Of a DNA stretch of 64,000 nt, positions 7,204-42,986 are shown piece after piece. A program made the translations under genes and the position numbers. The DNA is from Oculina patagonica (taxonomy: Eukaryota): positions 9,734,001-9,798,000 of the forward strand of contig NC_135761.1 of assembly GCF_052425735.1 (NCBI RefSeq), read 5' to 3'. How positions within the stretch are numbered: the first letter of the stretch is position 1; every line of letters begins with the position of its first letter. Under the pieces are notes generated by a model. It did no database searches. It was given only the letters and a program-made list of their open reading frames with translations, and was not told the origin of the DNA.

Positions 7204-9510
7204 CTAGCTTTCAAAAGTTAGCAATTTATTGATCATCTCTATCAAACTGCTGAAAAAATCATCACTTAAAAATTTTTCCGCTAGGAAATTAGTTGTTTTC
7301 ACGGCCTTAACAGTTTCGTGAGCAATGCGCTGCTGAATTTCCTTTACTTGTTTCATGACAGTCGTTTCAGGGACGATTTGACATGAATCCCTTCCCATGA
7401 TCATTTCATCAAAAAACATGAGTGATAGTTTGATGAATTCTTCATCAAGGTGCAGTGCGTGGGGATAGCTTTTGATATCCTCTCTAACCAAACGAGTAAA
7501 TCTTTCCCTATCCTCAATATGCGCGCTTTGCTTTCCGTTTTTGGCAAACCATTGCTTGCAATAACTTCTTGCCAAAAGGGACTCATGAACGCGCAAAAGG
7601 AGAGGCGAGATTTCGCAAACACTAAGTTTTACGATATTTCCCAGCTGGCGCCAGTAATCTCTAATTGAATCTAACACCTTTTTTACGTTATGGTTTTCGA
7701 CAACAGAAACGAGTGCGTTGAGGACCCTGAACAGTCTGATTTCGTCTGTAACTTGCAATATCAAAGGCAAAATCTTCGTAAAAAAGTTCACAAGTTTGCT
7801 GGCACAGGGAGAATCGTACACCTCTCTTAAGACAATTAACATTTCTTGCATTGCATACCACCAGTGAACATTGAATAGGAAATCTTGTTCTGTGAACTGT
7901 GAAACATCAAAAACACTTTCTATTTTTGTCACCTCGATAACAAAGGCATCTTTGTATTTTGACCACAATGAACTGGAAAATGCTGGATCTGAAATATTCG
8001 AATTCAGAGAGGTCTGCGAAAATGCACTTTCCGAGAAAAACTGATCCAAAATGTCAAGAATACAAAGCATGCAATCGACGATTAGCTTCATTTGTTGACC
8101 TTTCATTGCATTTCTGTTCTTGTTTCTGTGTTCGCCTGCAATAACCTCTTTATAATGCTGACAGAGAGAATCTATCAACTCATTTGTTACCTCTTCTGTA
8201 ATCAGTTTGGTCTGGAATTTTGAGTCAAAAAAGCCGTTAGCAAATTCTCTTGACTGAAACATCATTGGCTGAAGTCTTGTCAAAAAACTAACTGCTTTTT
8301 CAAAAAGGTTTTCTCTCACTTCAAGAACTATTTTAGCCGCTTCATCTAGTTTTACTGTGTCGGCAGACATAAAAAGGTCACTATCTGGCATGATGTAATG
8401 GGGCAGGTGACGTTTCTTCAAACAGTCTACAAAGCGATCCAGCAATGACAGTAGACACTCGCAGGAGTTGTCCTCCCTCCAGAAATCATTCTCTCTGTTT
8501 TCGCATTCCCAGAAAAAAATATTTTTTAGATGGTACGTGGAGATCACATCATGATCATTCAGGTAGGCTTTCTTTATTATCTTTAGCAGAACGAAGATGT
8601 GTCGCTGCACTGGAGACAGGCTTTGACCAAGTTTATTTTCGGCCAACGAAAAGGATATTCGCCACTCATGTTCGTCCATAATTGGTCCTTCTACCTCTGG
8701 GCTTTGTGCACAGGTTGCTAACTCTGGATTTGCGAGGTTTTCACGTTTTCCTCTGCCGACAGGAGCCAAATGACACCCAGATTGAAGGATGTCCGAAACA
8801 AGTGCAGACGAAGGCCAATCACTTTTGAGGAGACGTCTCGGCCATTCCTTTGCAGACTCAGGCCATCCATTTGGGTATTTGAAGACAACTGTTTTATCTA
8901 ATGACACAAAAGCTTCATACAAAAAATATAATTTACGTGCGGGACCATGCAATCTGTCGAAGAGCAAATCCATAATCATTTTAACTTTCCCCGTCTTCAG
9001 TCCCGCTAGCGCTGGGTCAATAAAATTTTCAAAAATTCCAGTTGTCAAAAGAAATGAATGAGGAACAAAATCAGAGTTTTCAGAAGGTTTATGAAGTTTT
9101 TTCCACTGCTCGGTATAACGTAACAAGACATATCTGGGGTCATTTCCACTTTGGACAATATCGAAAATTGGTATTTTTTCGTTGCCGTTCATTTCAAAGG
9201 GTTCTTTGACTGACATTATGTCAAGATCAGCGGCTAACATTGGAAAAGATTCGTCAGAATCCGAAGAATCCAAAGAATCCGAAAAATTGTTTCCACTTTT
9301 ATGTAGAATACTGCGAGGAATGCAAAGCCCCTCAGCACAACTTCCAACTGGCAAAAGATGGTAGTATGAATCCAACTGCTTTGCTTCATTTATTTCTTGA
9401 AACCAGAACATTTCACCAATTAGATATTCCACTGGCAGAATAAAGTTGAGTGATGTAGAGAATAGCTGTGGCCAAACTTTAGATTTCTCGTCAAAGCCTG
9501 GTAGAGATGG
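7204..9510 (-). CDS. cGLR (Mab-21/cGAS-like nucleotidyltransferase) terminal exon of the OTU-cGLR fusion gene B
   Basis: 768-codon frame opening at polypyrimidine ccatag| (phase 0: PSLPGFDEKSKVW...). Motifs GSCAEG, ADLDIM, SLDKT, WP..A.EW, GCHLAPVG, EWRISFSLAE, ISTYHLKNIFFW and LPHYIMP, then a long helical C-terminal region. Confidence 0.93.
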   Translation of the reverse strand, partial: PSLPGFDEKSKVWPQLFSTSLNFILPVEYLIGEMFWFQEINEAKQLDSYYHLLPVGSCAEGLCIPRSILHKSGNNFSDSLDSSDSDESFPMLAADLDIMSVKEPFEMNGNEKIPIFDIVQSGNDPRYVLLRYTEQWKKLHKPSENSDFVPHSFLLTTGIFENFIDPALAGLKTGKVKMIMDLLFDRLHGPARKLYFLYEAFVSLDKTVVFKYPNGWPESAKEWPRRLLKSDWPSSALVSDILQSGCHLAPVGRGKRENLANPELATCAQSPEVEGPIMDEHEWRISFSLAENKLGQSLSPVQRHIFVLLKIIKKAYLNDHDVISTYHLKNIFFWECENRENDFWREDNSCECLLSLLDRFVDCLKKRHLPHYIMPDSDLFMSADTVKLDEAAKIVLEVRENLFEKAVSFLTRLQPMMFQSREFANGFFDSKFQTKLITEEVTNELIDSLCQHYKEVIAGEHRNKNRNAMKGQQMKLIVDCMLCILDILDQFFSESAFSQTSLNSNISDPAFSSSLWSKYKDAFVIEVTKIESVFDVSQFTEQDFLFNVHWWYAMQEMLIVLREVYDSPCASKLVNFFTKILPLILQVTDEIRLFRVLNALVSVVENHNVKKVLDSIRDYWRQLGNIVKLSVCEISPLLLRVHESLLARSYCKQWFAKNGKQSAHIEDRERFTRLVREDIKSYPHALHLDEEFIKLSLMFFDEMIMGRDSCQIVPETTVMKQVKEIQQRIAHETVKAVKTTNFLAEKFLSDDFFSSLIEMINKLLTFES

Positions 9511-9902
9511 CTATGGCAGAATATAAATAAAACAGGAAATGTAAAAACAAAGTGAACCCTACAATTTACGGTAGATCATCTTAAAAGTATTCAAATATAT
9601 TAAGCTTAAAAACGGTTGCAGCTTTCATGTAACCTGACTGCACAAAGTGTGAGGAGTGCAAAGTTAAATACGCAGGGGCTGATCCAGGTTTTATGAACTT
9701 AAAAGCGACGGCAGTTGCTGTGATTAATAATAATTTAATAAGTTAATATTTGTAACACGCGGTTTCCATCGCGGGTATGACCGTACATACTTGATATTTT
9801 AATTGGTTTACAAATTTCGATTGAGATTTCTGATGTATGAAAACCTTTGATGGGCATGCGAGTATGAGGTTTCCAATAATTGATTTCCTGAAATAATTAA
9901 AG

Positions 9903-10850
9903 ATTATTTAACAAATAAAGAAGCCTAAGCCATGTTTTATACTGTCATAAAACACGACGGGCATTTGAGAACACGAGGGAAATGTAGAAAACATGAGCCG
10001 CAGGCGAATGTTTTCTACATTTCTCGAGTGTTCTCAAATGCCCGGAGTGTTTTATGACAGAATAAAACATGGCTTAGGCTTCTTTATTTGCTTTATGATA
10101 TAGATTTTAGACACCGCGAGTGAAACGTTTAATTAAAAATATGCACAACAAGAGCGAGTAAACAAAGATGAAAAGCAGAAAATAGTTTACGGGAAGACCA
10201 GAAAACTGACACAATTTCATTTAGTGTTCGACATAAAATAAGGCTAAACATTCAGGTAAATTTGTTTACCTTTCAATCTTGGTCTTGTCTTTATGAACTT
10301 CAATAAACTTCACCGACTCTGAATGCAATTTCGTCTCAGCATAATATAATAGTCTCGATGGCAGCCGTCCCTTGCTTCGTTCGGCTTGAACAAGCCGTAT
10401 AATTTCCAAAAAAGCTATTGCTTCGGATCTTCCCGTAAACCATAATTGTTGTCACAATCAAGTTCCAGCATGAATAGACGATTTAAGTAGAGATTGTTGA
10501 AGCAAATCTTCGAAAGAAAACTCTCTCGCTCGCTTTCCTTGCGAGTTTCATTCAACTCAAGAAGTGAACACCGCGGCACAAATTTTCCCGCCTCATAATT
10601 TCACTTCGTTTACATCAAAATGAAATGTCCAGTGGATTTATACTTAAAAAGGAATTCGATAAAACAATTATTCCATTCTACCTTGTTGGATACGAGTGGT
10701 TATAGCCAACGAACAGTCAACGACGCGCGAAGCACTCGAGGAAAGCTGACGAAAAACAATAAAACATGATTTTTCTATGTTTTATACTCTGATAAAACAT
10801 AGGTTTTTAGCCAATCAGAGCGCGCGTAGACTCCTATCTATATTATAAAA
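9903..10850. mobile_element. Probable non-autonomous repeat with a ~180-bp palindromic end
   Basis: 9911-10090 is a near-perfect hairpin (aaataaagaagcctaagccatgttttat ... ataaaacatggcttaggcttctttattt). The right boundary is approximate. Confidence 0.55.
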
Positions 10851-11375
10851 TGATTTTCTAATTATTTGATAAAAATGTGAAAATGAAAGGACTGCGTTAA
10901 TTTTAAGGAAGAGATGTCTTATTTTGGAAGTGGCCGTCAATTTGTAGTTATGTCCTCACAATCCGTTAAAGTATAACTGAACAATTAAGAACACTCATTT
11001 TTTTTTTCTCGACAGTGACATGACCACCTATGCATGGCCAACGTATGTACCTCGGCCTGAGAAGCTCCTTTCTTTACGAGACTTTTGTCCAGTAAAAATT
11101 CAGTTCATTTGTCTCAGTTGATTTCAGTTCTTATAAATATTTCAATTACTTTTGTGCAGGTTGCTATTAATACATCAGGGTGCCTTCCAGTGAAATGGTC
11201 TTACGCGCGATTTCTTTCACTTTTAAAAAGAAGCCACATAAACTGTATAAGGTGAATCTTTTATGATAATCATAGAGATTAAGAGCCGTGTTAATCCGTG
11301 ACTTCAAAATTAATTGATTAATTTGTTATTTCAAGTAAGATCCTGTAATACACACAATTGGATATAAATACCTAC

Positions 11376-11495
11376 CGAATATTTTTCCCTGAGAGCAAAG
11401 TAGTGATTTCCAGTGTGACCGAAATAGAGCTCATGGTGTGGTGTCCCATCTTGTTCAGGAGGGTCAATAACCTTAATATATGAATCTGGTGTTTC
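11376..11495 (-). CDS. OTU-module exon 3, gene B
   Basis: ttacag| ETPDSYIKVIDPPEQDGTPHHELYFGHTGNHYFALREKYS |GTAGG; 120 nt, phase 0/0. Confidence 0.87.
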
Positions 11496-11610
11496 CTGTA
11501 AACAAAAGTTTCTAATTTAAGAATAAAAGAATCGCTGACATTTTCGCGCAAAACTCCTAACAAAAAGCTAGTCATGCGAACGAGGCTCCCGTTCTTTATG
11601 ATATTATGTA

Positions 11611-12088
11611 CCTTATTCTCACTAAATTTCGCGAGTACTTAATTTCGCGAAAAATCAAGAGCCATATTTCGCGAGTACTTAATTTCGCGATTTTGAGAGA
11701 AAGGTACAGTTGGAGTGTATTAAATTTCGCGATTTTTATCTATTCTTTAATATGAAGCTTTGACCTCGAAACTGTAACACAATAATTTATATGAGATTTT
11801 GAGGAACTTGGCGGCAGAGATCAGTTCGAACAGTGCGACTGAAATACTGGGAGATGACTAATGGACAAAATTAAACATAAAACTCTTAAACATGAAGCTC
11901 ACACATGTTAGAATAACTATGATAAAACACATCGAGTTTCATTATTTTTTTATATTATCAGTACGATATTAAATTTCGCGATTTTAAACTTCGCGTGTCC
12001 TATATTTCGCGAGTATTAAATTTCGCGATTTTTTCAAAATCGCGAAAATCGCGAAATTTAGTACTCGCGAAATTAAGTGAGAATAAGG
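11611..12088. mobile_element. MITE with TA target duplication (Tc1/mariner-type)
   Basis: TA|ccttattctcact ... agtgagaataagg|TA, with repeated aaatttcgcga sub-terminal motifs. Confidence 0.8.
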
Positions 12089-12136
12089 TAGATCATGCCA
12101 GGCTTACTCAAATGGATCGTTCGCACTTGGCAATAC

Positions 12137-12480
12137 CGTATTTACTCGAATAAGCGCCGCCCCCGAATAAGCGCCGCCCTCGAATAAGCGCCGCATTTGG
12201 AACTAAAAAGTTAATAAGCGCCGCCCCGAATAAGCGCCGCAGTCCCGATGCGGCGCTTATTCGAGGAATTCTGTTATACTAAAAACAGCACTTCAAAGCA
12301 TCTCTAAAAGTGATTGTGATTGTTTCACTGCTCGCCCATAAAATTTCTATCCAACATTCTTACAATACGTAGTTCTGTAAATGTTGTGAAGGCCGCGAAC
12401 TTTGCCAGGACAGCTAGCAAAACTTCTCTCTTCAGCAAGAGACGAATTGTGACAATCAAAAGACGCTATTTTCAATAACT
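12137..12480. mobile_element. Truncated copy of the ccgtatttactcgaataagcgcc MITE
   Basis: Same family as the complete copy at 28400-28912; the right end is missing. Confidence 0.7.
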
Positions 12481-12528
12481 TTAAAAGATTAGATTGTATT
12501 GAAGTTTAGAAAAGAGTAAATTGCTTAC

Positions 12529-12705
12529 CCCGGAAGTTGTAATAATTGTTATTTTACAATGCAAGCATTCAGACAATGCTCTGATGACCAACTCGTTTGC
12601 CCAGTTGTTGCGTAACAAAGTAAGAGCTTCAGTCCAGTCAGAAGGCACATCTTGATTTTGAATATCACCATTATATATAAAATCGAGTCTGTTCTGTCCT
12701 CTTGA
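12529..12705 (-). CDS. OTU-module exon 2, gene B
   Basis: ttcttag| SRGQNRLDFIYNGDIQNQDVPSDWTEALTLLRNNWANELVIRALSECLHCKITIITTSG |GTAAG; 177 nt, phase 0/0. Confidence 0.87.
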
Positions 12706-13177
12706 CTAAGAAAAAATGGAATTTTTGTGGAGAAAGTAGAGAATTATAAATGATTGAATGACCAATGAGAACACTATACAAGAAACGATGACAGAAAAAA
12801 ACTGCGTGGACTCGAAATCAGACGCCATTTTCTATGCTCAACCTTAATTCAGCTTAGCTTTTGTTGGCCAATTGCACTTTCTATGTGAGATTGCCTTCGT
12901 TCAAAGCATGCGAATTCTAAACCCAAATATCTTTTTAACGGAGGGTTATATTATGTTTATCACAAATTTTGAAATATGTTTGTTTATCCTGTTTATCGTA
13001 TTTCGAATTAATAAATCTAAATTCTTAGGTTGAACATTACGTTTTTATCGAACTTTCACATGCACCTTCATGCACTACTCATAATCTTCCGTTCTCACTG
13101 CGCCATGGAATGCAAAGGTCCTCTTGCACTATTAACAACAATTAAAAAGGGCCGAGCTGATAATAAATATAACTTAC

Positions 13178-13342
13178 ATCATATTGGTTATGGGCCAGAT
13201 AGTCAAAAATTTCATTTTTTAAGTCACTTGCATCTCTTCCCAGTTGGAAAGCAGCTGCGTTGTAGAAGCAGTCACCGTCCCCTTCAGGGTCATAGGATTT
13301 TTCAAATCCATGTATCTCAATTCTTAAAGTTAGCAGGTCCAT
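13178..13342 (-). CDS. OTU-module exon 1, gene B (catalytic Cys)
   Basis: MDLLTLRIEIHGFEKSYDPEGDGDCFYNAAAFQL...NQYD|GTAAGT. An acceptor 25 nt upstream of the ATG (13368-13369) implies further 5' exons. Confidence 0.87.
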
Positions 13343-15899
13343 CTTGCTTTTCAGGTAAGCGCTGGATCTAAAAAAGAATAGCTTGTATGAAAAAAAACTA
13401 TGCCTGAAAAAGAATTTTAAGTGGTTGTCTACCTACATGACTTAATCCATTAGGGTTTATCCAATATATTTAACGGTAAACCTCTTTTATAATGATCTAA
13501 ATGAGGCAAGTTCATCGAAGGAGAGGAAATTGTCAGTAATCATAAGGTCAGATATCCAGTAGAATTCATCTAGTGCAGACATCCTCCAATTTCTTAAACG
13601 GCTATGCCGGTCATGATGGAAGTGACAGCTTATTGACAGCAGCACTGGTCGAAAAGTAACAATAGTAGAATTTAGTTGACACTTGAATTTGGGACCACTT
13701 AGTTTGATGTTTTAACCTGTGATATACCTCCACAGTGAAACGTGTTTAAGCTGTTATTACTCAAGGGAAATATTCCCATCGCGAGATTATTCGTTCGCCT
13801 CCACTTAAACAATGCACGAATAATGTATATGCGATGTGATACAACGAATTCGGTTAAGTATAGACAAAATTCAACGTATTGTTTTCTCTAGGGGAAAAAG
13901 ACAAGTTAACGAAGTAAATAATCAAAAAAGGTCAAAAAAGTTCCCTCCGTGGAAGGGATCCTCTCCTCACAAATGTAAAATGAAAATTTATAAATTCTTC
14001 CATCCTGGTACATTATGGAATCGTCGTCATCTCGTGAAACTAATATTGACTCTAAATTGTTATGTAAGTTGTCGCCATGAAGGGACGATAAATGTTAGTC
14101 ACCTTAACTTCTCAAACATTCCTCAGTCAATGCCGTTCATCAGTTGTCTTATTTAATGCAGTTTCATCTAGCTAAATGTTTGTGGATACTCTTGAAACAC
14201 TTTCTCAAAATGTCCACAGTAAGATACCATATCTGACATAAATAAATGTCTAAAAAAGGATTCGAGCTGAACGTGAGCTGAGGTAGTCACAGCTTCATTA
14301 ATAATGAATAATATGCTTGAGAACTTTGAGCTGAATTCTAATTACTTCTGATGCTGAATTCACTTGCAGAAAAATCAAGAAAAAAATAACTAAAACAGAG
14401 AGCTTTACCACTAAAACATTTGTAGACCTTGGGACGAAATGTTAATCACTCTTTTAATCACTTTCTTAAAATTATGAGTGTTAAAAACTTTTCGGGCGAA
14501 TAAAAAACGAGAAGCTTTCACGTTATAAAGTAGAAGAAAAAATAAATTGGTGTCAGAAAACAAACTTTATTGGCAGAAACTATTCTTGAACCTAAACAGA
14601 CGATTAACAGGCTTAAAAAATCTCATGGAACTAAAAACTGAAGCTAAAAACTACAGCACCTGAATGTTAACAAGTTTGATAAAACTATAGAACCGTGACA
14701 TTGGGATGACATAACTTCAATAATTGTTCAACAACAGTTTTACAGATACACTTTAACAGCATTCTGTTTGAAGGACATTTCTTCCCATGAAGTTTTATCT
14801 GGGGGATCATGTTATAACCTAATAATTTATCAGCACAAACAAGTTTCAATACGCTTACCTAGACCAGGCTTACACAGGGCTGTAGCATTTCTCCAAAATT
14901 AGTTCTGCGGCGTGGAACGACTAGCAACTGATGAGATTACGACTGTTATCAACCCTTCTGAAAAATAAATCACGTGCATGAGTTTATTAGCCAATCAATA
15001 CTGCTGGATTAAAATTTAACCATTATGTTATAGGGAACACCTTTCGGTTTCATTTTTGTTTTTCATTTTTCATTTTTGCATTTTGTAAAAAATTCTAGCG
15101 GCTTTGCTGGTTAAGCAGATATTACACAGAAAAGACGTTTTGTTGTAGAAAAGCTCGGTTAAGCTTGGAGATGTTTGTGGATACTTTTGAAACAAGTTGT
15201 TGGAAATGTCAAGATATTATGCTGACTGCGACGTGACCAAATAATTCCTAGAAAAGGACTCCAGCTGGGAACAGCTGAAATTATTGTACGAAAAAAAATT
15301 CCAGAACCTTCGCCAAAAATTGTCTCCATGAATAGGTTTATACAAGGGACGAATCGCAAGTTTTTCGTTTTTTTTGGTGGTGGTGATTTTCATTGATGCA
15401 TACGATAAAATGATGTTTGGTATACACCGTTTATGTTCATTGAATTTTTATCCTAAAACCTTATACGAGCTGATTAAGAATTAGACTAGAAAAAATATAC
15501 TTTTTAACGAGCATTTGCAAATTTCCAATAAAAAACTAAGATAGAAAGTATCTACTGGTAGATATAGAGCCTAAATAATGTTTTGTAATGATGGTCTCGA
15601 TGCAAGAACAGGCAACGAACTTGTCTGACAGGTTTTCTTTTGGGTCTCAATGCTGTTTCGTCAGTTAACAGGCCTAAACAGCTAGTAAACACGAAAAAAC
15701 AGATTAAAACATTGAAATGGTTCTGGATTCGCATAATCTTAAAAAAAGGTACCGATCTTTTTAATGCAAATTAAGATGCCAAGTCTGTGATATAGGCAGA
15801 TTCCAAGGAAAACAAGTTAAAACTAAAGACCACACATCTTTAATAATTGAAACAGTTTTAAAAAGATGCTTAAAGCGTGTAAGGTTGTTGGTGAATGCA

Positions 15900-17385
15900 A
15901 ATCCGTGGCACTTTCCGCCATTTCGTTTTTCGCTTGGTTAGTAGGGTTCGTAAAACTGAATGTCTCTTTATTTTATATTTTCCGTTCTCGATAGTGCGAT
16001 AAAGTTTTGAAAATTTTATCCTGTGCTTTATCCATTTTTTCTCTTTCCTTTTTATTAAATTATCATATTCCTTTTTCTGGTTCAATTTTATCCTTTTCTT
16101 TATTCCTTTTTCGATTTTTCATTTATCTTTTTTTCTTTTTTAGTTTTTCTTTATTTCTATTTTCCTTTTTCCTTTATTCCTTTTTCCTTAGTTCCGTTTT
16201 TCGTTTTACCTTTTTCCTTTTTACTATTTTCTTTTCTATTTATTTCTTTTTCTTTTCTCCTTTATTCTATCGTTGATTCAGAGGCATATTCTCAAACCCT
16301 TGTTATCGAGCAGCATGACACGTGTTCTAACCTCCTCTTCAACCGGCCACCATTCGTGTGACTTGCTCGAACGATGCTGTTTCATTTACTGAGAGTGAGG
16401 TATATCTGATAGATGGGTAAAGGTTTACCATCCACAACTTCAGAGATAATAATATTCTTGCGCCATTTCTAAGTTTAAACATGTTCTCTGCTTGACTTGA
16501 AAGTAAATTCCCGTCACGAGGGAAGCGACTGTTTCTTACTGCAGCTGGTTTCTCTCTTTTTGCCGCTTGTGCCGGCGGCCAAATAAGATGATTGGTACGA
16601 ATAACGATTTCCAAAGGGAACGGGTAACTTGTCGATGGGGTCGTGCTTGCCAGTTATTTGCTGTCCATGTACTTCGTATGTGACAGATTAAGGATAATAT
16701 GCCCGCAACATTGAAAACCATTGTGTCTGGATCGGGCATTACCACACTGTCATCACCGATTAGATAGATCGTTTCGGCCTGCAGGCTAAACACCTTGGAC
16801 AACACAGTAATCGTGCTATTATTAAGCTTTACTTTAAGAACTTGTTCTTTGCTTTGGACTTGCACAAAGTTCTTCACGTCAGAATTTGATCATGAAGACC
16901 ACTAGGCACCAAATGAAGCTCACATGGAAATGGCGAAAAATGGCGCGAAATTTGCGAGCAAAGGTTACTGGGTAAGCGATTGAAAGAAAAGAAAAAATGA
17001 CAGAAAGGAAAAGGAAAAAGGTAAAATGAAAAAGAAATACAGAAAAAGAAACAGGAAGAAAAAGAATAAAGAAAAAAGTAAAAAGGAAGAAGGTAAAATG
17101 AAAAAAGAAATAGAGAAAAAAAGAAAAAAGTTAAAGAGAAAAAGGAAAAAAGAAAAACAAAATATTGATAAAGGGAAAATAGAAATTTGAATAAAGAAAA
17201 GGGTAAAAGGATAAATGATTAGACGGTACTAGAAAAAAGAAATATGAAAAACGGAGAAAGCGCAGGATAAAATAAACAAAGATAATCCAACTATCGAAAA
17301 CAGAAAATATAAAATGAAGAGATATTCAATTTTACCAACCAAATGAATCAAACGAAAAACGAAATGGCGGAAAGTGCCACGGATT
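15900..17385. mobile_element. Unclassified non-autonomous DNA transposon with 5-bp TSD
   Basis: TIR aatccgtggcactttccgccatttcgttttt at both ends; ATGCA duplicated at 15895-15899 and 17386-17390; T-rich and A-rich sub-terminal tracts. Confidence 0.75.
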
Positions 17386-17461: not shown

Positions 17462-18490
17462 AATCCGTGAGCTTCATTTGGTGCCTAGTGGTCTTCATGA
17501 TCAAATTCTGACGTGAAGAACTTTGTGCAAGTCCAAAGCAAAGAACAAGTTCTTAAAGTAAAGCTTAACAATAGCACGATTACTGTGTTGTCCAAGGTGT
17601 TTAGCCTGCAGGCCGAAACGATCTATCTAATCGGTGATGACAGTGTGGTAATGCCCGATCCAGACACAATGGTTTTCAATGTTGCGGGCATATTATCCTT
17701 AATCTGTCACATACGAAGTACATGGACAGCAAATAACTGGCAAGCACGACCCCATCGACAAGTTACCCGTTCCCTTTGGAAATCGTTATTCGTACCAATC
17801 ATCTTATTTGGCCGCCGGCACAAGCGGCAAAAAGAGAGAAACCAGCTGCAGTAAGAAACAGTCGCTTCCCTCGTGACGGGAATTTACTTTCAAGTCAAGC
17901 AGAGAACATGTTTAAACTTAGAAATGGCGCAAGAATATTATTATCTCTGAAGTTGTGGATGGTAAACCTTTACCCATCTATCAGATATACCTCACTCTCA
18001 GTAAATGAAACAGCATCGTTCGAGCAAGTCACACGAATGGTGGCCGGTTGAAGAGGAGGTTAGAACACGTGTCATGCTGCTCGATAACAAGGGTTTGAGA
18101 ATATGCCTCTGAATCAACGATAGAATAAAGGAGAAAAGAAAAAGAAATAAATAGAAAAGAAAATAGTAAAAAGGAAAAAGGTAAAACGAAAAACGGAACA
18201 AAGGAAAAAGGAATAAAGGAAAAAGGAAAATAGAAATAAAGAAAAACTAAAAAAGAAAAAAAGATAAATGAAAAATCGAAAAAGGAATAAAGAAAAGGAT
18301 AAAATTGAACCAGAAAAAGGAATATGATAATTTAATAAAAAGGAAAGAGAAAAAATGGATAAAGCACAGGATAAAATTTTCAAAACTTTATCGCACTATC
18401 GAGAACGGAAAATATAAAATAAAGAGATATTCAGTTTTACGAACCCTACTAACCAAGCGAAAAACGAAATGGCGGAAAGTGCCACGGATT
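17462..18490. mobile_element. Inverted, internally deleted second copy of the 15900 element
   Basis: 17468-18490 is the near-identical reverse complement of 15900-16923, with identical 113-aa and 91-aa ORFs. The left end keeps only aatccgtg of the TIR. Confidence 0.8.
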
Positions 18491-20092
18491 TGTCCATAGT
18501 AAGATTCCTAAAATAAGAACATAAGTGAATTCCTAGAATAAAGGCCTCAAGTTGAGGTTGTCACAGCTTTATCAATATTTTAAGAGATGATTGAGAACTT
18601 TAGGGCGAGTCTTAGCTATTCCAAAACAAGATGCTGAATCTACTTTCAGAAAATTTCAGAAAAAATAAAACATGCTAAAGACCTTTAGGCGGAATTTTAC
18701 TAACTTTCTTGCTCGAAAACATTTTTATAAGTGCGAAAAAACCGTTTGGAGTTAGTAAAAATTAAAGCTTTAAGGTTGCAAGATAAAAGGAAAATAAATT
18801 GGTGTCAGAAAATAAAATCTTCTGGTAGAAATTATTCTTGAACCTAACGGGCTTAAAAAATTCCATGAAACAAAAATGTAGTAGCGATAGAATATTAACA
18901 GTACAATAAAACTGAAGACCTGTGACAATGGGCTGGAAAACGTGAATAATATTTCAACAGCAATATTACAGATAGACTTTAGCAGCATTCACCCATATTT
19001 CTTTTCGATTTTTTTTCTAAGGGGTCATGTTATTTTAATCTAAAAAGGGATCAGCACAAACAACTTTCAATACTCTTACCTTAACCAGGCTTACTCAGGG
19101 AGGTAGAATATCTAAAACGTAGTTCTGCGACAAAAGAACTACGACTATCAACTGATGAGATTTTGACTTTTATTAACCCTTCTGAAAAAAAAATTACGTG
19201 AGTTTATAAACCGATCAATACTACTAGAATAAAAACTATTCACCCTTCATTTTAATGTTTGCACTTTGTAAAAGATTTTATGCCGCTTTGCTGGTAAATT
19301 GATTATTATGTAGAAAGTTTCGACATTTAAGGAATAGTTTCTAAAAAAAGTAGTTAAAGATGGTCAATATAGATGCTAAATCTGAGATGAGCAAATTCAC
19401 AGAAAAGGAACTCAAGCTGAGGACAGCTATTATAATTGAAAACGTGTTCTAGACTTTTCACCGAAACTTAAAATACCCAGCCTCCTATTTCCACGAAAAT
19501 CTTCATAAGGCAAAGGAATCATAAGTTTTTGATATTCCGGGAACAAAAATTTAAACTAAAATGAGGAATGGGGAATGAAGAATTGAAGTTTTGTAAACTT
19601 CTACTGGCTCGACACTGGAGTAAACTATCCATACATCTTAGAAATGATGTGTGATACATACAGTACATGTATATGGCATTTATACCCCAAACCCTGACAA
19701 GAGCTGATAAAGAAGAATTCAAGAAAAAAGATTTAAAAAGATTAAAATTGAAACGTCCACAAACTTTTGATGAAAACGAGAAAAAATATTGAAAAGGATG
19801 TACACTTAAAAAGGTCTTTACTATGCAAATTAGGAAGCTAAGTCCAAAATATGAGCATATTACAAGAAAAAGTAATAATTCAGAAGCTAAAGAACACACA
19901 GCACAGAACACACATAACTTGAATAATTTACCAAGAATATGCTATCAATGAGCACGTCTGTAGCTTTGTGTCCAGGATATATTTCATTTTCTTGACTGAG
20001 GACTAATGTTACAATCTTACAAGTTATCAGCCCAACAAACGTTCAACATTCGTACGTACCAAAAGCGAACTTGTACTGACACAGTGTTGTAA

Positions 20093-28912: not shown

Positions 28913-30570
28913 TACATGACATTTGCAACCCAAGACATGTTACGTGTTGGTAGAGAATAATTCAAGAAAAAAAAATTGAAACGTAGAAAACCTTTTGATG
29001 AAAACTAAAATAAAAGAGTCTTATTCTTGTGAAAACAGTTTATAATTATCGAGTCTATTTAAACACGCTTTAAATCTGATGAAACTAAATTTAGTTCTAA
29101 TTATCACCGAAATGTTGTTTTATTTTATGTTGTATTTCTGAAGAGTTTTGTACCTCAATGCTTAAAGGTAGTAAACAAGGATATATAAACAGGTCAAAAT
29201 ATTGGAATGATTGTGGCCTGGCTCAGGGGAGAAGAAAGTCGGCACTTTTATTTGACGGCATAGCGGTGCCTGGAAACAGGGCAAGCCTGTGTCAATCAAG
29301 CCGTTGCTACGAAAGACGTCACCCAAAGTTTGTTTTTCTCAGAAAGATTTAAATATCAATGACTGTATGCGTGTGAAATGCGAATAGTGGCGGTTTTTGC
29401 GTTTGATGTTTCACGCAGCTGAGATCAGTGTTTTGCATTTTCATCCAGATTTCTCACCTGATGTTTCACGTCACTGAGAATGTTTTGGTGGCGTGGAATA
29501 ACAAGAGAAAATTTGTCACTGTTGACATTTATAATTAACAACCAAAAATGGTAAATCATTTCAAATTAAGGAGCAAACAAAATGCAAATAGCTACTGTAT
29601 TGTGTTTTGAGCACGGTCAAGACCAAAACATGCGAACTAAACAATAAACTTTGTCAAGCTATTCACTACGCTCTTTGCAACCATTCGATAGCTACTGCGC
29701 ACGCTCGGTTGCCCGGCACCGCTATGAAATGATTGACAATGAAACAAAAAATTTGGGGCAAGTAAAAAATGCTTTAAATAAAATATGTAGAAATATTTTA
29801 TGCCGCGATGCTAACTCTAGATCATCCTTTAAGGGCAATCTTCAATATGGAGGTCAGAGAATTGACATGACTAGCAAAGATCAGTGTAACACAGCATAGA
29901 CACTATACAATTTAATCATAAACAATAAAGTTACAAATGGCAGTAAAAGATGTACAAGTAATGCTTTTCAACAGCCACGACATCTGCAATCAGGTTAATT
30001 GTTCACTCTGTAGTCTATGATTTGGAATTATTACAGTATCGGGGTCGTGCGAAAGGTTGTAGACTCAACTCTCAACGGGGAATCGGACTTTTAGTCCTAT
30101 ACCTTTGCAAAACTTTTTTAAACTTTCTTAAATTTCTTACTAATGCTGTTCATATTAAAGAAAAACAGGGAGTTGTTACTTCAAAAGGGCGGTACCCCAG
30201 TGGCTTTACACCGCAGTTTATTATCTACTTACAGACTAACTAATTTCAAAACGTTCGTGTACTGGAAAACCAGTAAACGTTCGACCTAAATGTCCTGGTT
30301 CAACGGTTCCAAGACATCGTTCAAAACAGTGGTAAAATTATCTCCTAGGTGAAATAGTGGTAAAATAAATATCAAACAAGAGTAGTAGATAAGTTCTCCT
30401 TGTATGTTTGTTACTTTATTGTTTCTTAAATTATGACTTAGTCCATAATTGAGCGCCTCCGTTTTGGGTTACTAATACTTTGTAATAAATTCCGACTTGC
30501 TTGTAAGTCAATTTTTGTTAATGCCAATGTTTTTTCCATTTAGTTAACTGTCATTAAAAACTATTCCTTT

Positions 30571-32538
30571 TTATTCCTTGATTCTTTCTTCAAAAATCGC
30601 TGCAAGCTCCTCATTAAAAAACCTCAAAACTTCCTCGTTTGTAACTGTCATAAAGTCCACCTCATCTCGGAGTTTCTTCGAAACGTTCTTTCCGATCTTC
30701 TCGAGATCACTCCTCTTGAGCCAATCCCACAACATTTCTTTCGATGCCTCATGTGCTTTCTCCATGCCCTCTTTGGCTATTCTCATCTGTTCCTCTCTCA
30801 GAAGATTCATTACTCTTGTATAAGGAATTGCCAATGAGGGCTCCATTCCATTCCTAGCTTTGGCAAAGAAAACAAGCGCCGATGCAAAGAAGTCTTCATC
30901 AAAGGAAATATCTTTAACTTCCTCCTTCACGAATAATTGGAACTCGTCCTCACTCTTTCTCTGGTCGTTGCGTTCATTAGTTTGTAGAAGCCACAGTTTA
31001 CACAGAGTTCTTGAAAGCGTAGATTGGTAAGCATACAAAGACACATTTACCAACTTTTCTATCTTTTGGCGCTCCGCAGGCGAGATTCTTTGTAAATCTG
31101 CTATAACGTCTTTGCACTTGCCAACAAAAACTGAGTGGAGAGAGCTTAGCAGCTGTCTGTGATCTTCACTGGAGATATTTCTGTCTTGCATCTTTAGGAG
31201 ATGGTCCCCCAATAGCAAACCAAGACCTTGAAGATATGAGTTTGACTGATAAGTCAGAGACTGAAGGCGTTTCAGTAAATTCACCGTCTTTGGCAAAATT
31301 TTTCTTCTCACTTCAGCGACAATGGTAGCGGCTTCATTCATTTTGGATGGATCTTCATATTCCAGAGTGTTGCTCCGTGGAATGAAGAAATGGGGCAGCC
31401 GATGTGCCTGCAAACACTCTTGGAGACGATCCAAAATCAACAGAAGACAGTTAGCGGAGTTATCCTCTCTCCAAAAATCTGCCTGTTTCCTCTCGCTTTC
31501 CCAAAAGAGCAAGTGCTTCAAGCAGTACGTTGATATCACCTTCGGAAAGTAACATTTCTTAATCATTTTCAACAAAACCATGACATGTCGTTGCACTGAA
31601 GACACACTCTCGCCAAGTTTATTTTCGGCCACTGAAAAGGACGTTTTCCATTCTGTGTTGTCCATCGTCATTTTTCCTTCTTTGCATTCCTCCTGTAGAC
31701 CTGCGGAACTAGCACCTGACAGCTCCGGATTTTGGCAATAACTGAGCAAATCAACGGGATCACCAATACGCTTTCCTCTGCCAACCGGGGCCAAATGACA
31801 ACCAGCGTCAAATATTTCCTGGACAAGTTCGGGTGAGGGCCAACCACTTGGCCTCGGTCGGACCAACCATTCCATAGCAGGTTCTGGCCACGCTATTGGA
31901 TATTTGAAAACGCCTGTCTGATCTTCCTCGTAACTTGGAAAACCTCCGGACTCAAGTTTACGCACAGGACCGTGGAGATCGTATGACCACGAACCCTTTT
32001 CGCCATCAAATTGATTTGATTCAAGGCCAGCCATGGAATGATATTCATCCGCTGAAGGAAGCAAAAAAGAATGGTGCAGATAGGAAACGTTCTTGTAACG
32101 CGGTCGATGATCTTTCCATTCTTTGGTCAGCCTGAGCTTTGCATACTTTGGGTCGTCCTCGATATGTTCAACAGTGAATATGGGTATCAGTTTCTTTTCA
32201 CTATTTTCAACAAAAGAATCATTAGCTTCCATCCTATCAAGATCAGGCTGCCAATGTTCAAGCACACTGCCACGAAAATCAACCACACTACCGCGTTCAA
32301 CATCAGTTTTTCGAAGGAAAAACTGAGGGATACAAAATCCTTCAACTCGACTTCCAGCCACTATGGTTGCTTCCGATGGACTGACGAGAGATTCTTGATC
32401 TTCCCGCTGTGCTTCGTTCCATGTTTGCCACCCAAACCAATCTGCGTACACATATTCTACAGGAAACATGCAGTTGATCAGCGCAGAAAACGGCTGAACC
32501 CATATGTTTGACGTTTCATCAAAGCCTTGCGGGTGATT
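30571..32538 (-). CDS. cGLR C, main exon (Mab-21/cGAS-like NTase)
   Basis: Starts at ttttctacag| in phase 0 (NHPQGFDETS...). Motifs AGSRVEG, PDLDRM, EEDQT, GCHLAPVG, EWKTSFSVAE, ISTYCLK and LPHFFIP. Confidence 0.93.
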   Translation of the reverse strand, partial: NHPQGFDETSNIWVQPFSALINCMFPVEYVYADWFGWQTWNEAQREDQESLVSPSEATIVAGSRVEGFCIPQFFLRKTDVERGSVVDFRGSVLEHWQPDLDRMEANDSFVENSEKKLIPIFTVEHIEDDPKYAKLRLTKEWKDHRPRYKNVSYLHHSFLLPSADEYHSMAGLESNQFDGEKGSWSYDLHGPVRKLESGGFPSYEEDQTGVFKYPIAWPEPAMEWLVRPRPSGWPSPELVQEIFDAGCHLAPVGRGKRIGDPVDLLSYCQNPELSGASSAGLQEECKEGKMTMDNTEWKTSFSVAENKLGESVSSVQRHVMVLLKMIKKCYFPKVISTYCLKHLLFWESERKQADFWREDNSANCLLLILDRLQECLQAHRLPHFFIPRSNTLEYEDPSKMNEAATIVAEVRRKILPKTVNLLKRLQSLTYQSNSYLQGLGLLLGDHLLKMQDRNISSEDHRQLLSSLHSVFVGKCKDVIADLQRISPAERQKIEKLVNVSLYAYQSTLSRTLCKLWLLQTNERNDQRKSEDEFQLFVKEEVKDISFDEDFFASALVFFAKARNGMEPSLAIPYTRVMNLLREEQMRIAKEGMEKAHEASKEMLWDWLKRSDLEKIGKNVSKKLRDEVDFMTVTNEEVLRFFNEELAAIFEERIKE

Positions 32539-33097
32539 CTGTAGAAAAGAAGGCAATATGGTTGCGTTACACTCAGAGGGTCACACGATCTTTTCTTCCT
32601 AACCAGGACGTGCGCCTTACTTGTATCTAACTGGAAAAATGTTACTCTACAACTCAAAAAGATAAAACCAACTAATAAAGCTAAAGCTATCAAGAAAAAA
32701 AAAACTCCAAAACCTTATATAAGAACGCTAGCTAATTCTGAACACATTTGTCATGAAGTTACAGGGTAACTGTTTATGTAATGCAATTTTACACAATTCT
32801 GAGCTACCTTAGATTTATGGATACAAACCCTTTTTAATAAAGTGTTGGTAAAGTTCAGTTCCCAAGTTAGCCTTATATTCGAAAACTAATTAATGCTCAT
32901 TGTTCAAAATTAAATAGTTACACAAAAAACACACATTTAAATTAAGGATGTTGTGGCTATTATCCTTTTTGCTGTCAAGGTTCAATTCAGATTAAAAGTC
33001 AGATTTTCAGTTTTATCTGGATCAGACACAAACACAAGTACAAAGGAAAATATCAACATAACAAAGAAACACTGTGGTTTCCGCAGACGCTACATAC

Positions 33098-33115
33098 CGA
33101 TACTGCCACAACCAT
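33098..33115 (-). CDS. Putative start micro-exon of cGLR C (MVVAVS)
   Basis: 46-nt exon 33098-33143 with ttttacag| acceptor, caaaATGG start context and TCG|GTATGT phase-0 donor. Conserved in the mirror copy. Confidence 0.6.
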
Positions 33116-33797
33116 TTTGACTGCAAGTGATTAGATCTCAGGCCTGTAAAAGTAAGTTGTGATATTGTTTGCGTCAGCATTGTCAGGGATTGTAAGCTAG
33201 GATGTTTATTGTTTTCGATTTACATAGTTACGTGCAACTAGTAAATGAAACTGGCGTAGAAAGGGGAATAAGAGGAAGACTGAAACGGATTTTCTACCTT
33301 CAAAAATTAAGGCACATAATTTTTTGTGATCCGCCATTCGTGACAGTGAAAAGAAGAAGTACTTCAGGTAGAATTTAAACAGAAACTTTCCGCCACACTT
33401 GTTAATCGTCTATGTTCTTGATTTTGATCCCGATCACGAGCGTGGAGAGGGGGTGGGTTGAACGGTTTTGAACGAAGAACCTCAACGGGTTGTGTTATTT
33501 AAAGCACCTCAACTTTCAAAATAGCCGCAAGAGCATTTTCCCATACCCACTTGCAGAACTACGTACACCTTCGGCACGGCACATGTTATTACCATCGCAA
33601 AAGTAAATGTAAACCCCTACATACCCCGTGCGCCTTAATCCTGCGTGAGTTTTGTTAAGATAAATCAAATGTTCCGTGAGCTTCAACATACAAAAGTACT
33701 TTGGTTTTACCTGAACCGTAAGGTAATACTCGAGAATACACAAACCACCTATAATATAAACAGTGAAAAGAATTGTTTCTCGCTTATACAAGACCAT

Positions 33798-35028
33798 ACA
33801 CCGAATGCAAATATGGCGGACCACTCGGTTGTTGCCTGGGACGAGCTGCATGAAAGCGAGGCTAGTCAGGCTTCGGTGTTGTGTTCATTCTCGTCCCCAT
33901 AGCCCTTTCGTTTCTCTTAGCCGGCTGGGCCTTGGCACGAGGAAACAAAGGGCTCTGGGGACACAGGATTTCCAGTCCTAGATTCTAGGACTTCCGGTCT
34001 TCATGTATGCAGTCATGACGTTTCAAAAGAATGTATGAGAGAGTCGTTACATTTTCGACTTCCGTTTAGGAATTCTTTGTTCGAAACAGCCAATCAAAAA
34101 AATTCGAATTAATTCAAAAATCATATGTCCCCAGAGCCCTCCGTTTTCTCGTGCCAATCCGGCTAAGAGAATCGAAAGGGCTATGGGGACGAGAATGTGT
34201 TGTGTTTTGACAATGCTTTCGTACAGAAGTCTTGCTTATTCATCGATCTGGTGTGTTTCTTTTCGCTGCTGCTACGAGTTGCTGTGTTTCTAGAAGTGTT
34301 CACTGTTTGCCTCTAAGGGAAAAAGTGGATCAATGCAATTCGTTGAGACGAAACAAAGGAGTTCGCGATCGCCGCGGGAACTACCGGTATTGAGGTTTGT
34401 TCGCTACATTTCAGGTTCGAAGATCTTAGAAAATTTCGTTTAAATGACGAGCTTATGTGGTGTCTGGTGGTGTTGCAGCACGAGTTACATGGCCAGGACC
34501 TTTCCCAAGGTAAAGGAAAGCTCCACTTCCAAGACATCCTCTGTCTCAAAAGAAGATGTTCATGTCCGGCTTTGTTCGCGTACGATCCACTCGCACGGAA
34601 TCGCACGATCAAATACTAACCAAGTGAATAAAATTCAACGGCCCCGATAGTTAAAGCTAGTGAAAACATTGAGCCAAATAAGAAAGACTTGGAGCTAAAT
34701 GTGATCGCTTACACATTTTTCTAAGATCTTCTAACCTGAAACATAGCGAACAAATTAACAGTTCTCGCGGCGATCGTGAACTCCTTTGTACTCCTTTCTT
34801 TCGTCTCAGCGAATTGCATTGATCCAATTTTTCCCTAAGAGGCAAACAGTGAACACTTCTATCACTTCTCGTGGCATTCAGAAACACAGCAACTCATAGG
34901 AGTAGCGAAAAGAGACACACCAGAACGAAAGCATTGTCAAAACAAAACACCGAAGCCTGACTAGCCTCGCTTTTATGCAGCTCGTCCCAGGCACCAACCG
35001 AGTGATCCGCCATATTTGCATTCGGTGT
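33798..35028. mobile_element. ISL2EU-like non-autonomous element with THAP remnant, AT TSD (left arm only)
   Basis: Long TIRs acaccgaatgcaaatatggcgga. The empty site is visible in the right arm at ~47980. Degenerate KKWINAIR*...VCSLHF (THAP-like) at ~34320-34420. Confidence 0.75.
33886..34197. mobile_element. Nested MITE with 9-bp TSD
   Basis: tgttgtgtt|cattctcgtccccatagccctttcg ... cgaaagggctatggggacgagaatg|tgttgtgtt. Confidence 0.85.
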
Positions 35029-36683
35029 ATGGGTTCAATATTAACAGTCATCAAGTTGAAAACACATTACATTCTTCTCTTTCCTCCCTTTTCCTCTATC
35101 GGTGTTGTATTAATGAAGCGAAGGGAAAAAAGTGTACGCGAAAGCCAATCTGGAAATATTGGTCTCTAGAAAGTAGTCGCGTTTGCTCGGTTCGATGACA
35201 TATGATTGGAGATTTGAACTAACCAAGCAAACACGCTGCTGTTTTCAAGTTTAGCTATTTTCAAATAAGAGCAAATAAAATAACGTCTATAACTGTGTTA
35301 TAATTGTTATACATACTAATACTTATCTGAAACTAACACCGCCAAACCCGCAGACAGAACACCTTGAATAGATTCGGTACCCTTAATCACAACTGAATAC
35401 AAGACTTAAGATTAAACTAAATAAGAAATTTAGAACTTCAACCATGTTTTAAAAAGGGAATGACAGGTGTTAGTAGCATATAGGGGAAGTATAAACAGGC
35501 GAATACTTGCAATAAAGCAGATCTACATATTATTTGCGACTGCTTTTTGCAACTTTTTATAAAGCGAACTAGATTACCAAGCTGTTAATGTATTACATTC
35601 TTATATCTTACTTCAATGGAGACTTCACGCTCACTGTTGTCTAAGCTTAAATTCTTTGGTACCCCTTTCTGCAGGTTTCCGCGTTTAAGTGGATCTGATC
35701 CTTGCAGGCAATTCTCTCTTTTATTGCGGTCTTAATGATATAATGATACTGCAATAGCTTACTAATAGCACAAGCGTGCAGTTGCTTCAGCTCCTTAATT
35801 TTTTTCGTGGAGCTAAAAAAGGAAATATAAAACGTTACTCAAGAGATTATTTTTAGCAACCACTGACGCCACCCATGCAAAAGAGTCTGAAAACCAAGAC
35901 TCATTCCAGCTTTTCTCAGCGTAAATTTAAGCTTATGTCGGGAATTAAACGTTCGCTCTAAATTTACAAATTGAGCAAAGGATGACAAAGGCTACGTAGT
36001 GGAGATGAGTAGAATTATTTATTCTAGGTTTCAGCTTCCAGTTAGCGACATCAAGGCATTCAGTTTCGGAAATTTAGGAGTTTACCTTTCAGTTTTTAGT
36101 GTTACATTGTTAGCTGTTTTTTTTTCGAATTTGGCTTTGAAGGGGTTACGTTTTAGATTTCAGTTTTCAACATGTAGGTTTAAGCTGCAGTTTTCTGCAT
36201 TAAGCCACGGTTAAATTTTAGTTTTGACACGGGCGACAGCCAGGACAGCCGAAAGGGGAGAGAAGATGATAGAGATAGTCCACGTGCTGTTATCCCCGCT
36301 ATATCAACAACGGGAAATTGAAATCTACTAAGCTTCCAGTGAGCTTGTGCCGGCAACATTTATAGAACCAAACGCATTTTTTATTTAAAGAACTATCAGT
36401 TGACCTAATAACCATTCTCTGACGCATTTTAAACACAAAGAAACCACTGAAAAAGGTCTTTCGATGAAGACAGAGCAAAATAAATTAATCTAACCGCGTC
36501 CTCGATCATTTCCAGGTCTTTTAATCCTTTAAGTATGCTATCTTTATCGATATTTTCAATCATGGTACAAAACATTGTTTTTAACTCAGAAGAAACATCA
36601 AAATAATGCATAGTACCGCATAGAAAGAGCTATCACTGAGTAGTTCCGAAAGGAAATTATGTAACTATGATAATCGCAATAAA

Positions 36684-36984
36684 CCGTAAAATTCCGATTA
36701 TAAGCCCTGGGCTTATACAGCTTCGTAAGGGGTTTTGGGTGGGCTTATAAACGGAGGGGCTTATATCGGAGGGGGACAAAAGTCTTAATAAAAGCATTTA
36801 TGTTTAGCCCTGTTCAATGCTGTTATCCAGCAGTGAAGGGCTTATATCTGTGGGGGGGGGGGGGGAATTATGACCGGATATATTTTTTGTTGTTGTTTCC
36901 AGGTAGATGAGCCTATACTGACCAGGGAGGCTTCAGTAATTATAAGCGAATGGGGGGGGGGGGCTATAACCGGAATTTTACGGT
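36684..36984. mobile_element. MITE (ccgtaaaattcc TIR); mirrored at ~45496-45794
   Basis: ccgtaaaattccg ... cggaattttacgg with ataagccc/gggcttat repeats. Present in both arms. Confidence 0.75.
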
Positions 36985-37468
36985 ATGCTGCAGTTCCTGT
37001 AAGGACCTTTCTACGTTAAAATGTTTGACTACAAATAATAAAAGGAACGAATCTGGAACAAGCGTTGAATCGGGTGCAGCTCAATCCTTTAAAATTGGTT
37101 CACGCATAAAAGTTGGCTTTATATCAAATAAAATTGATGAATCATTCATTCTTTTTTTCATCAGGAAAGCTAACATACCTATTACTGATTTATGCTTAAG
37201 GCTTGTTTTCATCCTTGTACTTGCTTTGCGACCGTTTTGACCGCTTGTGACCGCTTACTTCGTGAAACGGTTACCGCAACGGTAGTTGCCTCACAGGATT
37301 ATAAACTAAGCGTAATACGCGATCATCGAGTCCATTTTATACCTTTGCCTCGTCGTGTTTTCGACACTACTGATTCTCTCGGGATTTATTAAATTTTTCC
37401 TTTCTTCAAAATTGTTCTTATTTTTCTGTTCTTACTTGTTCTTTTACTTAGCTGTCTTCAAAAATGTC

Positions 37469-42903: not shown

Positions 42904-42986
42904 TTTGTTTTTGATTCGTCACACAACGCCAAATCCGACTGCGTGCCAGCGTTGTGTAACTCAGCAATTTCCTTTTACCTCTACAG

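Follow-up and report, generated by a model that had tools for sequence, protein, structure and literature searches.

Can an animal pattern-recognition receptor carry an enzyme of the ubiquitin system in its own polypeptide chain? The question is raised by a locus of the coral Oculina patagonica, in a stretch of 64,000 nucleotides (RefSeq assembly GCF_052425735.1, contig NC_135761.1, positions 9,734,001 to 9,798,000 of the forward strand) that we call the window and in whose own numbering all positions are given. Three short minus-strand exons encoding a domain of the OTU family of deubiquitinases precede here one long exon encoding a cGAS-like receptor (cGLR), and it has to be asked whether they form one gene and what the two parts could do together. 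The cGLRs are a newly recognised and large family of animal pattern-recognition receptors and, to our knowledge, little has been established about what keeps them in check in invertebrates. Our data indicate that the OTU-cGLR fusion gene is very probably real.

The gene spans window positions 7204-13342 on the minus strand and consists of four open exons of 165, 177, 120 and 2307 nucleotides (the last with the stop codon), which are bordered by AG and GT, are in phase 0 throughout and give a spliced product of 922 amino acids. Its parts are as follows.

13178..13342, minus strand: exon 1, 55 codons, with the start codon and the OTU Cys box GDGDCF (translation; GT donor; kept in eight copies)
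12529..12705, minus strand: exon 2 (59 codons), coding for the central helices of the OTU and for WANE (PF02338 match; RNA joints)
11376..11495, minus strand: exon 3, 40 codons, OTU His box GHTGNHYF with His145 (no stop; phase-0 GT donor)
9511..11375, minus strand: intron 3, 1865 nucleotides, repeat-rich, between exons 3 and 4
7204..9510, minus strand: exon 4, 768 codons plus stop, with a linker, the cGLR/Mab-21 nucleotidyltransferase (NTase) core and a C-terminal all-helical domain

The GDGDCF box lies at 13265-13282 (Cys25 codon 13268-13270), GHTGNHYF at 11397-11420 and WANE inside exon 2, while the cGLR motifs GS, DLD and SLD are found at 9340-9345, 9220-9228 and 8896-8904. The initial annotation, made from the letters of the window, had proposed these three OTU exons and the cGLR exon with GT-AG sites, phase 0 and a product of about 922 amino acids, and splicing confirmed it: the resulting protein (P0182) is identical residue for residue to RefSeq XP_078365086.1, an "uncharacterized protein LOC144649475". 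The "768-codon" exon of that annotation is right for the sense codons, to which the stop codon at 7204-7206 has to be added. It had also called the gene hidden, which proved true of one annotation out of two. The submitter's GenBank model KAL9974893.1 (863 amino acids) goes from exon 1 to exon 3 to exon 4, thereby already containing the junction of 11376 with 9510, and omits exon 2, in the absence of which the OTU domain falls under the Pfam threshold. The gene is therefore hidden in the GenBank annotation only and not in RefSeq, and it is to users of the submitter's models, with their skipped exon 2, that the OTU domain is invisible.

Residues 1-154, encoded by the three small exons, are an OTU-family cysteine-protease domain. 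The profile PF02338 scored 27.6 bits with the whole protein and 31.8 bits with residues 1-160, covering profile positions 2-127 of 128, for a Pfam curated cut-off of 23.3 bits (those of Mab-21 PF03281, Mab-21_C PF20266 and PUB PF09409 are 24.1, 24.1 and 34.3 bits, respectively). Neither the single exons nor the exon-2-less GenBank model reached the OTU threshold in Pfam; exon 2 on its own matches the profile at E 0.008, and its addition is what takes the domain over the cut-off. The AlphaFold model of residues 1-160 has a mean predicted local distance difference test (pLDDT) of 88.9, and Foldseek matched it best to OTUD3 among the structures of the PDB (E 2.6e-7, TM 0.67/0.75, about 19% identity), followed by DUBA/OTUD5, OTUD1, a Wolbachia OTU, the viral OTU (vOTU) of Crimean-Congo haemorrhagic fever virus and other nairovirus OTUs, and yeast Otu2, so that the OTU identity claimed in the initial annotation is upheld by profile and fold alike. 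By sequence the nearest solved OTU is the vOTU of the nairovirus Tacheng tick virus 1 (7Y5M), with an alignment that takes in the Cys box (GDGDCF), the His box (GHTGNHY) and all that lies between them, at an E-value of 0.004-0.04. Cys25, in its Asp-Gly-x-Cys box, and His145, in GNHY, align to the corresponding boxes of 7Y5M and are present in every copy of the domain that we found. Transposon cargo was also considered as a source of the OTU exons and was rejected for the present gene, given the conserved introns, the purifying selection and the lack of a Rep/helicase nearby.

The long exon encodes a cGLR by profile, fold and motif. Mab-21 and Mab-21_C scored 37.2 and 67.4 bits with the full protein, each above 24.1, and with the OTU match this places all three domains of the spliced protein over their cut-offs. 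The AlphaFold model of exon 4 (pLDDT 75, predicted TM-score 0.79) is matched by the folds of MAB21L1 (E 4e-11), the coral receptor Sp-cGLR1 (8GJY, E 1.6e-10) and human and mouse cGAS, and Sp-cGLR1 8GJY, MAB21L1 and cGAS are also its matches by sequence in the PDB. The following features belong to this exon.

9220..9345, minus strand: putative NTase active-site motifs, G210/S211 (exon-4 G56/S57) and D249/D251 (exon-4 D95/D97)
8896..8898, minus strand: third catalytic Asp, P0182 D359 (exon-4 D205), invariant in the family
7207..8196, minus strand: C-terminal helical domain of about 330 amino acids, all-helical in AlphaFold (exon-4 residues 439-767)

An alignment of 28 relatives shows no variation in Asp-x-Asp or in the third Asp, and conservation of at least 90% at Gly-Ser. 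The DLD stands at the start of a predicted strand, and D359 aligns with the Asp of "SVDLTL" in Sp-cGLR1 and of "SVDITLAL" in human cGAS, the latter of which we take to be the catalytic D319. The cGLR identity and the third Asp, as read in the initial annotation, are sustained by profile, fold, conservation and the cGAS alignment, while its GS and DLD are putative active-site motifs retained in the family. The Gly-Ser/Asp-x-Asp lobe lies outside the sequence alignments to solved structures. With the Gly-Ser loop and an unusual 28-residue insert preceding Asp-x-Asp modelled at low confidence (pLDDT below 50), conservation is the ground on which these active-site residues are assigned. A linker of about 15 residues, flexible and likewise modelled at low confidence, leads from the OTU domain to the NTase core. 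The C-terminal helical domain gave no Pfam match and is weakly conserved in cGLR-only paralogs (25-33% identity).

Comparison with other copies carries most of the argument that these exons belong together. The window contains three OTU triplets and also cGLR genes that lack them.

2525-541, minus strand: OTU triplet A (exons 2525-2361, 1848-1672 and 660-541), with downstream PUB and cGLR exons past the left window edge
13342-11376, minus strand: OTU triplet B, that of the OTU-cGLR gene under study
56457-61372, plus strand: OTU triplet C (exons 56457-56621, 58476-58652 and 61253-61372), with its cGLR exon past the right window edge
about 62407-63951, plus strand: PUB exons following triplet C
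48969: first exon of a cGLR-only gene, whose big exon runs from near 49509 on the plus strand
33115: first exon of a cGLR-only gene, whose big exon runs from near 32544 on the minus strand

Together with five copies at loci from two other assemblies in the European Nucleotide Archive (ENA), ERZ25067872 and ERZ25067556, the 165/177/120-nucleotide triplet was found eight times with sizes, boundaries and phases common to all. We treated the two assemblies as other corals, no 90% protein cluster being shared with O. patagonica among the matches listed. At all eight loci in the three assemblies the OTU exons stand co-oriented directly upstream of a cGLR exon, either 0.4-3.7 kb away or with PUB exons between, and this collinearity, with the RefSeq model, agrees with the initial proposal that exon 3 feeds the cGLR exon. 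One locus of ERZ25067872 has the OTU exons, then four PUB exons, then the cGLR exon, and at another locus of the same assembly (L005) the intron from OTU exon 3 to the cGLR exon measures only 395 nucleotides and contains no PUB; in ERZ25067556 two loci have OTU followed by a cGLR exon, with NTase parts 41-44% identical to the O. patagonica gene, and in one of them the intron has taken up a reverse-transcriptase insertion. The PUB-less layout is hence found in both other assemblies. Pairwise OTU ratios of nonsynonymous to synonymous substitution (dN/dS) are 0.17-0.29, and 0.51 for one within-assembly pair. Given the recurrence of the triplet with identical boundaries and the low dN/dS, the four-exon structure is far beyond chance, and both the OTU and the NTase domains look intact and under purifying selection.

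The step that joins them is the splice from exon 3 to exon 4. Exon 4 needs an upstream coding exon, because immediately upstream of it is an in-frame TAG and in every relative the conserved coding sequence sets in at codon 1-7, its first methionine coming 34 codons in. Across the intron, exon 3 runs without a stop to a phase-0 donor that all copies keep. At the transcript level, the exon 1-exon 2 splice (joint of 12705 with 13178) is present in RNA contigs of three runs (X1, X2 and X4), that of exon 2 with exon 3 in an RNA contig 93% identical to the gene, and contigs at 99% identity cover 7420-8336 and 9142-9430 of exon 4. The junction of 11376 with 9510, for which the initial annotation had looked to spanning transcripts, is crossed by no RNA contig of runs X1-X4, none of which reaches 9510, nor by any from a run search aimed at 9300-9510: words from this interval occur in one indexed run, whose contig ends at 9430. 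The exact 27-nucleotide pattern of the spliced junction had no match in metagenome contigs of the Joint Genome Institute, and protein-database searches for further OTU-cGLR proteins or junction-spanning open reading frames (ORFs), made with residues 1-95 of P0001 and residues 1-220 of P0182, returned O. patagonica models and exon-1 fragments only. Two Logan contigs (L001 and L002) were evaluated as splice evidence and rejected, as they carry intron sequence upstream of the cGLR exon. The decisive junction not being in the RNA contigs, the fusion therefore rests on the RefSeq model and on the comparative evidence.

Several observations weigh against a single fused gene, to which this gap in the transcripts belongs. 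Expression of the gene is low, with an RNA contig depth over exon 4 that is as low as over the OTU exons (about 4-9). RefSeq divides the neighbouring paralog A into OTU-only or OTU plus partial-PUB products of 185 and 220 amino acids and a separate PUB-Mab21 gene, and OTU-only transcripts or isoforms are plausible. A contig of run X4 over 11375-11417, which resembles the end of OTU exon 3 at 91% identity, runs on into 28 nucleotides that had no match in the window or the fetched loci, and this points to a further OTU-bearing paralog whose downstream exon differs. The cGLR-only paralogs (P0052 and P0188) splice onto an acceptor homologous to 9510 from a 4-codon first exon of their own about 0.55 kb upstream, and read-through past the exon 3 donor would add just 14 codons before a stop. 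One could accordingly picture two transcription units, or mainly separate isoforms, with exons 1-3 giving a small OTU protein that ends by intron read-through or in some other terminal exon, the cGLR starting from an unannotated short first exon, and the 922-amino-acid fusion being a prediction artefact or a rare isoform. We find this quite unlikely, since RefSeq does model copy B as a fusion, the intron at L005 is so short, eight loci in three assemblies keep the arrangement and its phases, the OTU being under purifying selection, and intron 3 shows no homology to the regions where the cGLR-only paralogs have their first exons and holds no ATG mini-exon with a strong donor; a first exon of the cGLR's own within 9511-11375, which the initial annotation had named as the finding that would speak for separate genes, was thus not found. 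Very improbable is a decaying copy that has lost its PUB cassette, has received transposons in its introns and is on its way to a pseudogene. It would fit with the repeat-laden intron 3, in which tblastn detected no PUB remnants, and with the apparently truncated Mab-21 part of neighbouring paralog A, but the frame stays open through all 922 codons, with intact catalytic residues and a dN/dS of about 0.2, the RNA contigs over exon 4 are 99% identical to the gene, and the PUB-less layout exists in the two other assemblies as well.

In regards to function, the explanation that we prefer as a whole, and regard as probable, is one three-part OTU-cGLR gene in a tandem cGLR cluster with signalling and isopeptidase roles. 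Like other cGLRs, the NTase would make a signal of the cyclic-dinucleotide type upon ligand sensing, and the tethered OTU might be the isopeptidase that strips ubiquitin or a ubiquitin-like modifier off the sensor itself or off partners close by; such trimming in cis could set the stability or the activation threshold of the sensor, and in the PUB-bearing paralogs the PUB module may couple the sensor to p97/VCP. That the OTU works as a deubiquitinase in cis on the sensor is possible, and we propose this part of the explanation tentatively. The functional ideas of the initial annotation (self-stabilisation, ubiquitin gating, a decoy) likewise have the standing of proposals. The canonical third catalytic residue of OTU proteases is an Asp or Asn, usually two positions after the His, and an acidic or amide residue is absent from that position here: it is Phe147 in the gene under study, Val in P0114, and Phe or Val across the family. 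Some OTUs are active in spite of lacking an acid at His+2, and the putative O. patagonica protease would rely on a dyad or draw its third residue from elsewhere. The low-confidence modelling of the Gly-Ser loop and of the insert similarly tells against a firm view of the NTase active site. The main mechanistic rival, which we judge somewhat unlikely, accepts the fusion and takes the OTU for a ubiquitin-binding or recruitment module, or for an integrated decoy that signals an attack by pathogen factors, and does not have it work as a deubiquitinase. Besides the His+2 position, this would accord with the viral nature of the closest sequence relatives (in the PDB the OTU of the nairovirus L protein, in the ESM Atlas viral clusters) and with the joining of OTU modules to other immune-type domains, such as the kinase of P0114, whereas Cys25, the Asp-Gly-x-Cys box and His145 are retained in every copy under purifying selection. 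At the far end of what could be proposed, and in our view unlikely, is a conserved anthozoan, possibly also mollusc, cGLR subfamily with its own virus-like OTU isopeptidase, with or without PUB, whose sensors are switched by reversible ubiquitin or ubiquitin-like conjugation, managed in cis.

A sensor with a ubiquitin-system protease in the same chain, and sister genes bearing PUB, would be a hint of ubiquitin or ubiquitin-like control of cGLR signalling outside vertebrates. The OTU-cGLR also offers a compact test system, with one recombinant protein and one Cys mutant.

Among the known systems, Sp-cGLR1 of Stylophora pistillata (8GJY) is the closest to the cGLR part. The two have the Mab-21 NTase and Mab-21_C core in common, 8GJY being the best PDB match by sequence (E 4e-32 with the family profile), and likewise the catalytic Asp residues; the source of Sp-cGLR1, too, is a coral whose cGLR repertoire is expanded, as the text of PMC9980059 has it. 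Identity is about 23%, and the O. patagonica protein differs by adding the OTU, the helical domain of about 330 amino acids and the 28-residue insert between GS and Asp-x-Asp. The same source (Li et al. 2023), in its text, describes fusions of cGLRs to tetratricopeptide repeats, ankyrin, a death domain or a tandem cGLR, pools rarer architectures as "Other" and names stony corals as carriers of accessory-domain fusions. The principle of an NTase core with extra modules is the same, although what that text names are interaction domains, and the O. patagonica module is a ubiquitin-system enzyme, the OTU, joined by PUB in paralogs. The text of PMC9980059 makes no mention of OTU, and in its Table S2, covered as far as the entries before "O", a listing is possible. 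Full-text literature searches in which cGLR or Mab-21 was combined with OTU, PUB or deubiquitinase gave no relevant paper. The OTU-cGLR is an accessory-domain cGLR with a ubiquitin-system protease as its module, publicly annotated and, as far as these searches go, neither discussed nor characterised in the literature. The belief of the initial annotation that the architecture was undescribed thus stands for the papers searched and fails for the databases, where it is annotated in RefSeq and recurs in paralogs, in other assemblies and in a cluster of the ESM Atlas. This cluster, of 81 proteins of about 1036 amino acids, mostly from Mollusca, is the best named feature match to the whole protein (score 0.86, 172 shared features) and has the same two-family combination, with Mab-21_C in 100% and OTU in 99%. 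It belongs to another phylum and was matched by features, without alignment or domain order, and we take it as a lead that the OTU plus Mab-21_C layout may not be unique to corals, which counts against its singularity.

For the logic of control, the nearest parallel is bacterial. In type II CBASS (an antiphage signalling system based on cyclic oligonucleotides), as described in PMC10097602 and PMC11153139, a cGAS/DncV-like nucleotidyltransferase (CD-NTase) is governed by reversible ubiquitin-like conjugation through Cap2 (E1/E2) and Cap3 (a JAB isopeptidase). Both systems encode a cGAS-family cyclase with a dedicated isopeptidase alongside; in the bacterial one, according to these sources, Cap3 is a JAB metalloprotease from a separate gene, whereas the O. 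patagonica OTU is of the cysteine protease type and lies in the same polypeptide. No E1/E2 partner was found for the OTU-cGLR, and the analogy is one of logic and not of homology. If true, a cis-OTU cGLR subfamily would be for eukaryotes what Cap2/Cap3 control is for bacterial CD-NTases, the logic having been either inherited or reached by convergence. In vertebrates, deubiquitinases such as OTUD3 are described (PMC13194595, PMC10566363) as regulating cGAS in trans, again an OTU-family enzyme on a cGAS-family sensor, and OTUD3 is also the top fold match of the O. patagonica OTU; OTUD3 and cGAS are, however, separate proteins, and the fold match is at family level only, at about 19% identity. 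The nairovirus L-protein OTU is the closest solved relative by sequence, aligned end to end through Cys box, central helix and His box, although the E-value is no better than the 0.004-0.04 given above and the O. patagonica OTU is a spliced host gene of three exons. The p97-associated OTU enzymes of the YOD1/OTUD2 type have a UBX-like domain instead of PUB and have no NTase. The OTU-PUB paralogs resemble them in pairing an OTU with a p97-binding module.

The OTU-cGLR gene is a member of a tandem cGLR cluster in which the OTU triplet, with or without a four-exon PUB cassette, is spliced to a common phase-0 acceptor. Within the window PUB was seen in paralogs A and C only, the gene under study having none. 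The GenBank protein P0004 of copy C has PUB followed by Mab-21_C (93.4 bits for PF09409 in residues 1-230), and P0183, of paralog A, scored 73.1 bits for PUB, both above the 34.3-bit cut-off. The RefSeq products XP_078365101-3 of paralog A (P0109 and P0177) splice the exons of triplet A, and P0109 matches PF02338 with 32.2 bits over the full profile. Since the cGLR-only paralogs use the same acceptor, one junction serves an OTU, a PUB or a bare start exon, and the locus shows how an immune gene family can exchange the modules at its N-terminus by means of exon cassettes with a common phase-0 junction.

A maximum-likelihood tree placed the eleven closest NTase relatives of the gene outside a well-supported clade (99/99) made up of the window's cGLR-only paralogs and the OTU-linked group of ERZ25067556; upstream regions were covered for seven of the eleven, and these seven are OTU- or PUB-linked. 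In ERZ25067872 the PUB-less copy groups with a PUB-bearing copy, and because of this we consider that the presence of PUB changes repeatedly or that copies undergo gene conversion. Fragments resembling OTU exon 1 form 69 clusters at 50% identity, all ending at D followed directly by gtaagt. Two ORFs from Logan transcripts (P0114 and P0178, 574-616 amino acids) have an OTU of the same type, 42% identical and with the "GHTGNHY" box retained, joined to two internal repeats and a protein kinase domain. Because exon-1-like fragments are widespread and a kinase fusion exists, the OTU triplet is a mobile N-terminal cassette of several gene families.

Some further observations concern the individual copies and their annotation. 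The Mab-21 part of paralog A looks truncated, its products P0025 and P0183 having 424-446 amino acids and ending soon after Mab-21_C begins, and this copy may be degenerating. The submitter's pipeline seems to break the OTU domain systematically, the GenBank models of copies A and B both lacking exon 2; that of paralog C (KAL9974898.1) starts at an exon at 60862-60972, in OTU intron 2, and lacks OTU exons 1-2, its start exon adjoining an assembly gap (N run 59385-59932). At a related locus (L008) an RVT_1 reverse-transcriptase ORF (7507-9111) is inserted in the intron that separates OTU exon 3 from the cGLR exon, with intact flanking exons.

In the gene under study, introns 2 and 3 (11508-12500 and 9820-11019) contain short repeats, of whose units cgcgaaatttaata and ggcgcttattcg are examples. 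Around 9932-10070, in intron 3, there is also a palindromic element with mirror ORFs. RNA-contig depth over these intron 2 and 3 repeats, 9820-11019 included, is very high (up to about 10,000); they are probably abundant transposon or miniature inverted-repeat transposable element families that stand outside the gene proper. A 1-kb inverted repeat pair (15898-16923 and 17467-18492, 99.7% identical) lies between the OTU-cGLR gene and the next cGLR. Farther along the window, a large inverted duplication (30391-39495 and 42901-51650, arms 95-99% identical) gives two mirror pairs of cGLR-only genes; the centre of this 30391-51650 region coincides with an assembly gap (N run 40857-41356), which leaves two readings, a true palindrome or a fold-back of the assembly.

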